In this document: positions 24,701 through 27,700 of the stretch, one piece after another
How positions within the stretch are numbered: the first letter of the stretch is position 1
Layout: every line of letters begins with the position of its first letter
Assembly: GCA_965649765.1 (NCBI GenBank)
Contig: OZ287753.1
Location: 40,486,001 to 40,550,000 of the forward strand
Length of the DNA stretch: 64,000 nt
DNA from: Bispira polyomma
Taxonomy: Eukaryota
Direction of reading: 5' to 3'
Notes under the pieces: model-generated
The model's input: only the letters and a program-made list of their open reading frames with translations
Database searches by the model: none
What the model was told of the DNA's origin: nothing
Program-made: the position numbers and the translations under genes

Positions 24701-27700
24701 TCATTTTGTTTCATACAAAAAAAATCTCTTCTATTTTGATGCATATTGTAATATCTGAATGAATTCTAGCTCTACTAAACATGCTCGGATAATAGAGGTT
24801 CCACTGTACCAAAGACTGTATATTGAACACAGAAGTTTTAATTGTAATCCCTGGATACCACTTATACATAATATATGGAATTCTTAAGAACTTACTTTAT
24901 CGTGTACAAAAAAAACCCAACAGGTAAGGCCTCATGTGTTTACATGAACACTTTATCCAAAACAATAACCTCCATATATTTGTACATGCTGTTGTAGTGG
25001 TGAGCAGAATTTCCATGTGTTTTACTACATCTACCATGGTCTGTGTCAGGAGGACAGGATGGGAAAGTATCACCTGCAGGACCAGGCAGTCTACAGGTAA
25101 ATAATAGATTACAGGTAAGGTGAGATGTAATATAGAGGTAAGGTGTGATGTAATGTACAGGTAAGTTGTGTTGTAATGTACAGGTAAGGTGTGATGTAAT
25201 GTACAGGTAAGATGTGATGTAATGTACAGGTAAGGTGTGATGTAATGTACTGGTAAGGTGTGATGTAATGTACAGGTAAGGTGTGATGTAATGTACTGGT
25301 AAGGTGTGATGTAATGTACAGGTAAGATGTGATGTAATGAAAGGTAAGGTGTGATGTAATGTACAGGTAAGGTGTGATGTAATGTACTGGTAAGATGTGA
25401 TGTACAGGTAAGATGTGATGTAATGTACAGGTAAGATGTGCTGTAATGTACAGGTAAGGTGTGATGTAATGTACAGGTAAGGTGTGATGTAATGTACAGA
25501 TAAGATGTGATGTAATGTATATGTAAGGTGTGATGTAATGTACAGGTAAGGTGTGATGTAATGTACAGATAAGATGTGATGCAATGTACAGGTAAGGTGA
25601 GATGTAATGTACAGGTAAGGTGTGATGTAATGTACAGGTAAGGTGTGATGTAATGTACAGGTAAGGTGTGATGTAATGTACCGGTAAGGTGTGATGTAAT
25701 GTATATGTAAGGTGTGATGTAATGTACAGGTAAGGTGTGATGTAATGTACAGGTAAGGTGTGATGTAATGTACTGGTAAGGTGTGATGTAATGTACAGGT
25801 AAGGTGTGATGTAATGTACTGGTAAGGTGTGATGTAATGTACAGGTAAGATGTGATGTAATGAAAGGTAAGGTGTGATGTAATGTACAGGTAAGGTGTGA
25901 TGTAATGTACTGGTAAGGTGTGATGTAATGTACAGGTAAGATGTGATGTAATGAAAGGTAAGGTGTGATGTAATGTACAGGTAAGGTGTGATGTAATGTA
26001 CTGGTAAGATGTGATGTAATGTACAGGTAAGATGTGATGTAATGTACAGGTAAGATGTGATGTAATGTACAGGTAAGGTGTGATGTAATGTACAGGTAAG
26101 GTGTGATGTAATGTACAGGTAAGATGTGATGTAATGTATATGTAAGGTGTGATGTAATGTACAGGTAAGGTGTGATGTAATGTACTGGTAAGGTGTGATG
26201 TAATGTACAGGTAAGATGTGATGTAATGAAAGGTAAGGTGTGATGTAATGTACAGGTAAGGTGTGATGTAATGTACTGGTAAGATGTGATGTAATGTACA
26301 GGTAAGATGTGATGTAATGTACAGGTAAGATGTGATGTAATGTACAGGTAAGGTGTGATGTAATGTACAGGTAAGGTGTGATGTAATGTACAGGTAAGAT
26401 GTGATGTAATGTATATGTAAGGTGTGATGTAATGTACAGGTAAGGTGTGATGTAATGTACAGATAAGATGTGATGCAATGTACAGGTAAGGTGAGATGTA
26501 ATGTACAGGTAAGGTGTGATGTAATGTACAGGTAAGGTGTGATGTAATGTACAGGTAAGGTGTGATGTAATGTACCGGTAAGGTGTGATGTAATGTATAT
26601 GTAAGGTGTGATGTAATGTACAGGTAAGGTGTGATGTAATGTACAGGTAAGGTGTGATGTAATGTACTGGTAAGGTGTGATGTAATGTACAGGTAAGGTG
26701 TGATGTAATGTACTGGTAAGGTGTGATGTAATGTACAGGTAAGATGTGATGTAATGAAAGGTAAGGTGTGATGTAATGTACAGGTAAGGTGTGATGTAAT
26801 GTACTGGTAAGGTGTGATGTAATGTACAGGTAAGGTGTGATGTAATGTACTGGTAAGGTGTGATGTAATGTACAGGTAAGATGTGATGTAATGAAAGGTA
26901 AGGTGTGATGTAATGTACAGGTAAGGTGTGATGTAATGTACTGGTAAGATGTGATGTAATGTACAGGTAAGATGTGATGTAATGTACAGGTAAGATGTGA
27001 TGTAATGTACAGGTAAGGTGTGATGTAATGTACAGGTAAGGTGTGATGTAATGTACAGGTAAGATGTGATGTAATGTATATGTAAGGTGTGATGTAATGT
27101 ACAGGTAAGGTGTGATGTAATGTACAGATAAGATGTGATGCAATGTACAGGTAAGGTGAGATGTAATGTACAGGTAAGGTGTGATGTAATGTACAGGTAA
27201 GGTGTGATGTAATGTACAGGTAAGGTGTGATGTAATGTACCGGTAAGGTGTGATGTAATGTATATGTAAGGTGTGATGTAATGTACAGGTAAGGTGTGAT
27301 GTAATGTACAGGTAAGGTGTGATGTAATGTACAGGTAAAGTGGGATGTAATGTACAGGTAAGATGTGATGCAATGTACAGGTAAGGTGAGATGTAATGTA
27401 CAGGTAAGGTGTGATGTAATGTACCGGTAAGGTGTGATGTAATGTACAGGTAAGATGTGATGTAATGTACAGGTAAGGTGAGATGTAATGTACCGGTAAG
27501 GTGTGATGTAATGTACATGTAAGATGTGATGTAATGTACAGTGTGCAGGCAACGTGTGATATAACATCAAGTATAGAGGCAAAATGTGCTAGATTAAGTA
27601 TAGTCTTATGGTATACATTACTTTACAGGTAATATGTGGTGTTGGGTAGTGAAGAAACAAATACTAAAGCTTACTCTCAATTTTCTTCAGCAGAGTATAT

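Follow-up and report, generated by a model that had tools for sequence, protein, structure and literature searches.

How can an exon be joined correctly when the intron behind it opens with a long run of copies of its own 5′ splice site, most of which pair better with U1 than the site itself, and is such a run a regulatory device or a by-product of mutation that splicing tolerates? The question is raised by a 23-bp tandem array of Bispira polyomma, which we analysed within a 64,000-nucleotide stretch of genomic DNA (the window, whose numbering applies to all coordinates given without a locus name). A sequence-only reading of the same DNA had pointed out the array and proposed several functions for it.

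The array and its host gene

The host gene lies on the + strand and encodes a myosin of class III. Different exons match the Pfam families Pkinase, Myosin_head and IQ, and the abalone, starfish and zebrafish homologues carry the name myosin-IIIa/IIIb-like, the best full-length one being that of abalone. A 99-nt coding exon of the motor domain (24998..25096, + strand; Pfam Myosin_head E=0.009, tblastn and the open model) ends in TACAG, the five nucleotides that recur as the exon-derived portion of the repeat unit, and is followed by the 5′ splice site CAG/GTAAAT (25094..25102, + strand; the slash marks the exon-intron boundary), which lacks the G at +5. A 26-exon model joining 25096 to the acceptor at 28086 reads through 1,120 codons without a stop, and this fixes the true donor at GT 25097; myosin III homologues are continuous across the 25096/28086 junction in tblastn, and the sequence-only reading had placed the donor, TACAG/GTAAAT, at the same site. 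The spliced model was joined to check the frame only, and homologue searches were run exon by exon. The next coding exon, of 103 nt (28086..28188, + strand), is matched by abalone myosin-IIIb-like P0058 in tblastn and has an open frame; a homologue search with the motor exon's own ORF gave no match, and the one close relative, P0001, is 93% identical and lies on an 867-nt contig that ends short of the array intron, so that these searches yielded no related copy of the intron.

Directly behind the motor exon, and on the sense strand as had been reported, TRF finds a tandem array at 25110-27541 with a period of 23, 106.2 copies and 92% matches, which a unit-by-unit listing resolves into 106 copies of the donor junction (25110..27541, + strand; 5 exonic and 18 intronic nt each). 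The unit contains the exon-end TACAG together with the donor GTAA, and the array begins at the real exon-intron boundary. The donor-plus-array stretch makes up 82% of the 2,989-nt intron, in keeping with the claim that the repeat fills most of a 3-kb intron; without the array the intron measures 557 nt, and its non-repetitive remainder (27542..28085, + strand; sequence and model) holds a pyrimidine tract and the 3′ splice site.

The copies keep their splice-site character to different degrees: GT is retained in 102 of the 106 units and lost in 4, AG/GT is present in 75 and missing from 31, CAG/GTAAG occurs in 67 and TACAG/GTAAGG in only 46. The array of about 105 near-consensus donors described earlier is thus real but its count slightly generous, the sequence given for its unit is right for the 46 and not for the rest, and the statement that each unit is an AG/GT was wrong for the 31. 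The first unit is diverged and 18 nt long, so that its identity to the real junction is 13/20 in a symmetric window. The first pseudo-donor, CAG/GTAAGG (25112..25120, + strand; GT 25115), lies 18 nt downstream of the true GT, and the third, a perfect consensus CAG/GTAAGT (25158..25166, + strand; GT 25161), 64 nt downstream.

A search of the 1.035-Gb genome with the 23-mer returned 105 matches inside the array and 1 outside, with 2 mismatches. What had been called a satellite is therefore a tandem repeat, but a single-locus minisatellite and not a dispersed one, and the ground on which a chance match had been envisaged, a 23-mer dispersed away from exons, falls away. A dispersed satellite was also rejected on the weak BLAST matches elsewhere, which are 66-76% matches to unrelated arrays of other periods (11-46 bp).

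Within the array, blocks of 18 and 22 units are themselves duplicated, and the longest repeated string of variants spans 22 units compared with at most 9 in 200 shuffles. Because the unit contains the junction and is unique to the locus, the array would have begun as a tandem duplication of the last ~5 nt of the exon with the first intron bases. Growth to 106 units would have followed, probably by slippage or unequal exchange and including the duplication of 18-22-unit blocks.

Strong copies and the choice of donor

In duplex with U1 the true donor reaches -8.3 kcal/mol, with a gene median of -8.65, and the main copies reach -11.5 (as does the first pseudo-donor) and -11.0, within an overall range for the copies of -11.0 to -12.1. 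The nearby decoys pair with U1 3.2-3.8 kcal/mol better than the real donor, and 74 array sites exceed it by 1.5 kcal/mol or more. At -12.1, the copy at 25161, third in the array, equals the gene's best real donors. A simple consensus count gives 8/9 for both the true site and the main copy, the advantage of the copies being the G at +5; the earlier statement that they match U1 better than the real site therefore holds by duplex energy and not by base count. Furthermore, splicing at any copy retains AG-G TAA, the stop that had been predicted, at 25098-25100 and many exons before the end of the gene. Masking of the decoys by RNA structure was rejected, as the array RNA folds less than its shuffles (z=+3.4).

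Arrays of this class have been described before. In the human F7 gene, the first unit of a 37-bp VNTR in intron 7 spans the exon-intron junction with 4 exonic nt, and junction-spanning repeats are also found in CBS intron 13, IFI6/6-16 intron 2, LMNB2 and PDGF intron 4 (PMC1557585). Only the most upstream of several identical F7 donors is used; in minigenes, downstream sites up to a consensus value of 91 never competed, and when the first site was inactivated, only its immediate successor came into use (PMC1557585). The fallback offered by the sequence-only reading, that cells must possess a reliable means of disregarding the copies, agrees with these findings. As in F7, the donor studied here is reiterated down the intron as sense-strand pseudo-sites (5 exonic nt instead of 4); the differences are 106 units against 5-25, an invertebrate host, pseudo-sites that are stronger than and not identical to the real donor, with one of them perfect, and a case known from sequence alone.

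A second precedent is provided by the “mirages” of amphioxus Adh3 and globin genes, tandem duplications of exon boundaries that leave splicing undisturbed (PMC3087553). The mirages and the present array alike duplicate an exon-intron boundary and keep its splice signals, and they also share unit lengths of tens of bp, a homogenised middle with diverged edges, several loci per genome and a marine invertebrate host, whereas the mirages are known from few genes and from both 5′ and 3′ boundaries and the Bispira arrays occur at hundreds of putative loci with an apparent donor bias. Since the junction-spanning class has been described since the 1980s-2000s, the locus is not a new regulatory device. 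Nor is the array a one-off device: it is a real and extreme case of a known kind of repeat that is usually harmless.

We consider it probable that the array is a junction-spanning (“mirage”-type) minisatellite that is tolerated rather than selected. By analogy with F7 and amphioxus, the spliceosome would take the most upstream donor, the motor exon would be joined correctly and the distal copies would stay inert; the intact frame indicates that the gene survives the array. The first-site data behind this tolerance are mammalian. Against it stand the perfect copy 64 nt downstream and the 74 stronger sites, and where the authentic site of an F7 minigene was weak, pseudo-sites of perfect consensus captured 70-90% of splicing (PMC1557585), so tolerance is not guaranteed.

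Because the nearest copies out-pair the real donor with U1, some leakage is to be expected: a fraction of transcripts would use the first to third copy, meet the TAA and be removed by NMD. Such a leak is plausible, given that the first two pseudo-sites are used in CBS and IFI6 (PMC1557585) and that ABCA7 offers a further parallel, and it would depend on the first few units and not on array length. The ABCA7 array, a 25-bp VNTR in intron 18 with alleles of 12-427 units, shows length polymorphism, retention of one unit, exon skipping and length-dependent effects on splicing (PMC5954066). It shares with the present array a short unit starting at the donor, allele sizes that bracket 106, and a premature stop and NMD on use of a copy; polymorphism, unit retention and skipping were demonstrated in ABCA7, while the Bispira array is represented by a single assembly sequence. 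By comparison with ABCA7, a modest length-dependent effect on splicing may occur here too.

The same observations can be carried further, to an array in which the strong copies nearest the donor capture much of the splicing and in which alleles, differing in unit number or in the sequence of the first units, set the amount of productive myosin III mRNA via NMD or exon skipping. We regard such control, the chief alternative to tolerance, which would rest mostly on the first units and not on all 106, as unlikely. Among 20 junction arrays, a set biased toward already strong true donors, this is the only one whose nearby decoys out-pair the real donor by more than 3 kcal/mol, and the competing perfect pseudo-sites of F7, the first two pseudo-sites of CBS and IFI6, and the unit retention and length-dependent skipping of ABCA7 all lend the idea some weight. 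However, F7 pseudo-sites with values up to 91 did not compete, and the lean of the array's variation to donor bases (~9 of 15 variant types) is not significant (p=0.08), selection weakening the decoys being suggestive only.

With about 70 decoys stronger than the real donor, the array falls in the regime where the mammalian first-site rule partly failed, and the locus suits a test of 5′ splice-site choice in an invertebrate.

Tandem duplications at other splice sites

Six further donors of the myosin III gene are duplicated downstream: 33304 (88 bp x2.7, 33262-33500), 34048 (28 x2, 34046-34103), 46363 (about 106 x2, 46335-46500), 47542 (65 x7.7, 47505-48002), 60181 (59 x8.8, 60137-60666) and, in degenerate form, 28954 (28935-29030). 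Their copies are about equal to or below the real donor in strength, except at 28997. Counted within 300 nt and with the studied array and 34048 left out, a downstream copy matching at least 16/20 is found at 5 of 30 donors of the gene, compared with 2.4% of intronic positions (p=7e-4), and a copy at 1 of 30 acceptors, a difference between donors and acceptors that is not significant (p=0.19). Two acceptor-side duplications are seen in the window, a 130-nt copy at 21770-21920 that retains the AG and the exon start, and a ~75-nt copy at 59885-60020 that has lost the AG.

Genome-wide, we counted three copies of a motif spaced 8-38 nt apart, with the reversed motif as control. Triples of the donor motifs CAGGTAAG, CAGGTGAG and AAGGTAAG number 954, 1197 and 767, compared with 174, 302 and 202 for their controls, and donor 8-mers thus form arrays about 4-5 times more often than controls, while single CAGGTAAG sites reach just 1.4 times control. 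The non-donor motifs CAGTGAAG (113 against 154) and CAGGTYYH (1901 against 1493) behave differently from the donor motifs, and the acceptor-like TTTWCAGG gives a weak excess, 617 against 449, in a low-power comparison that draws partly on donor arrays. As match counts are inflated by long arrays, loci were also counted on the first contig: two of the donor motifs have at least 17 each and the third has 19, against 6 and 0 for two controls. Scaled up, these counts imply several hundred putative donor arrays in the genome.

Reading of 15 distinct other loci with donor-motif arrays placed the array start at an exon end in 11. By an exon score for which the myosin gene served as training set, the exon-like donor start lies above the 95th percentile of the null in 5 of 7 arrays selected by pattern (triple CAGGTAAG) and in 6 of 8 selected by BLAST; Pfam backing of the adjoining exons is strong for talin and RCC1 and weak for OST3/OST6 and SEA. 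Thirteen neighbouring arrays at these loci that had not been selected include 2 clear junction copies (RCC1-like and CDK5RAP3), 1 array starting 9 nt past a donor and 1 uncertain case. Many units include 10-45 nt taken from their own exon (L050, L053, L028, L029 and, in the window, those at 33304 and 60181), and the intronic part of the units across the examined arrays is 6-89 nt, measured by eye.

Individual loci show the range of these structures. At L026 (G000:C8), a 29 bp x128 array of 3.7 kb (2543-6269) lies directly behind an exon-like donor, its copies CAG/GTAATA being weaker than the real donor of that locus. The RCC1-like gene at L028 (G000:C6:984500-990500) has introns crowded with unrelated arrays, of which two span a donor, and its 22-bp array is broken by an insert of ~820 nt.

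Collectively, these data show that tandem duplications accumulate at 5′ splice sites in Bispira polyomma and that the studied locus is an extreme case. Finding one structure at apparently hundreds of donors that are unrelated to each other, as are the units, favours a by-product of mutation over a purpose-built regulator, and the proposed course of events would end with the locus at the extreme of this genome-wide pile-up. Tolerance explains survival only at the background rate, so a mutational bias at donors or exon edges is needed for an excess of several-fold; as the excess exceeds the neutral background, purifying selection alone is insufficient. Tentatively, and with some doubt, we suggest that short tandem duplications arise in the germ line preferentially at 5′ splice sites, a mutational hot spot that might stem, for instance, from a lesion at the donor coupled to transcription or to the spliceosome and that would have seeded the several hundred arrays, splicing ignoring even far stronger decoys; in the myosin gene about one donor in five is duplicated. 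If so, the 106-copy array would amount to the extreme natural experiment on first-donor selection in a non-mammalian animal. The excess of donor arrays suggests a link between splice sites and the origin of DNA duplications, which is relevant to intron gain and the shifting of exon ends; a genome-wide count of junction arrays was not found in a literature search.

The donor motif also occurs antisense to its own gene and near acceptors, in 3 of the 15 other arrays (L027, L029 and L062), and the L027 unit resembles that of the myosin array. This would fit a family of minisatellites with an ACAGGT core that arise or insert anywhere, in either orientation, and that came to lie beside the myosin donor by accident. 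We judge that reading very improbable and largely refuted: the 23-mer is not dispersed, the enrichment tracks the full donor consensus (AAG/GTAAG too) and not the CAGGT core, and many units carry stretches of their own exon. The core explanation was rejected on the small excess for CAGGTYYH next to the strong excess for donor motifs.

At L027 (2817-3510, guanylate cyclase exon) and L029 (2811-3009, CDK5RAP3 exon) the arrays abut an acceptor and, seen from the antisense strand, resemble arrays of donors; their unit has the look of the acceptor junction in which CT replaces AG, that is, an inverted copy of a quasi-palindromic junction. The CDK5RAP3 exon is flanked by arrays on both sides. At L062/L063 (G000:C1:38.06 Mb), an LDL-receptor class A-like exon, whose acceptor and start are partly duplicated upstream, adjoins an antisense donor-motif array without AG on the gene strand.

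Two of three acceptor-abutting arrays, and the L062 array ~230 nt upstream of an acceptor, have fewer AGs on the gene strand than expected (4, 2 and 0 against 6.1, 13.8 and 23.5); the third abutting array does not. Under the most-upstream-donor rule donor arrays are nearly neutral. Upstream acceptor copies are probably used more readily than downstream donor copies, and the AG-poor acceptor arrays are consistent with this.

Proposed U1 functions and the integrity of the array

A recursive splice site has a pyrimidine tract before its GT and occurs singly, as a conserved site, in introns of great length. The array resembles such a ratchet point in the juxtaposed AG/GT of its 75 units and differs from it in the dozens of adjacent copies, the short intron and the lack of a pyrimidine tract, the last already noted from the sequence and borne out here (35% pyrimidine, longest run 2 nt). 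Recursive splicing was rejected on these figures together with the 31 units lacking AG/GT and an intron of only 2,989 nt.

More generally, some 70 strong sense-strand U1 sites in little-folded RNA could be taken for a selected U1 snRNP sink, a telescripting platform or a recursive-splicing ladder, the functions proposed by the sequence-only reading. These found no support, and we consider them highly improbable. For a ladder, neither a pyrimidine tract nor a branch context is present in the array; for telescripting, the intron without the array is short, and AATAAA and ATTAAA are absent from the array, with two ATTAAA in the remainder. U1 is very abundant relative to the nascent transcripts of one gene, which makes a sink at a single gene implausible, and the structure is shared, with unrelated units, by what appear to be hundreds of unrelated genes. 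An assembly artefact inflating a short repeat is hardly credible, for although long near-identical arrays are prone to mis-sizing, this one has 20 unit variants in ordered nested blocks, diverged units at its edges and no Ns, as expected of real minisatellite turnover.

Two minor features were noted elsewhere in the myosin gene. A candidate 9-nt microexon lies at ~35600-35620, between the motor exons 33953-34047 and 38264-38373, the frame being open without it. A LINE-like reverse-transcriptase fragment occupies ~42480-43720 of an intron, with related 3′ ends near 16000-16400.
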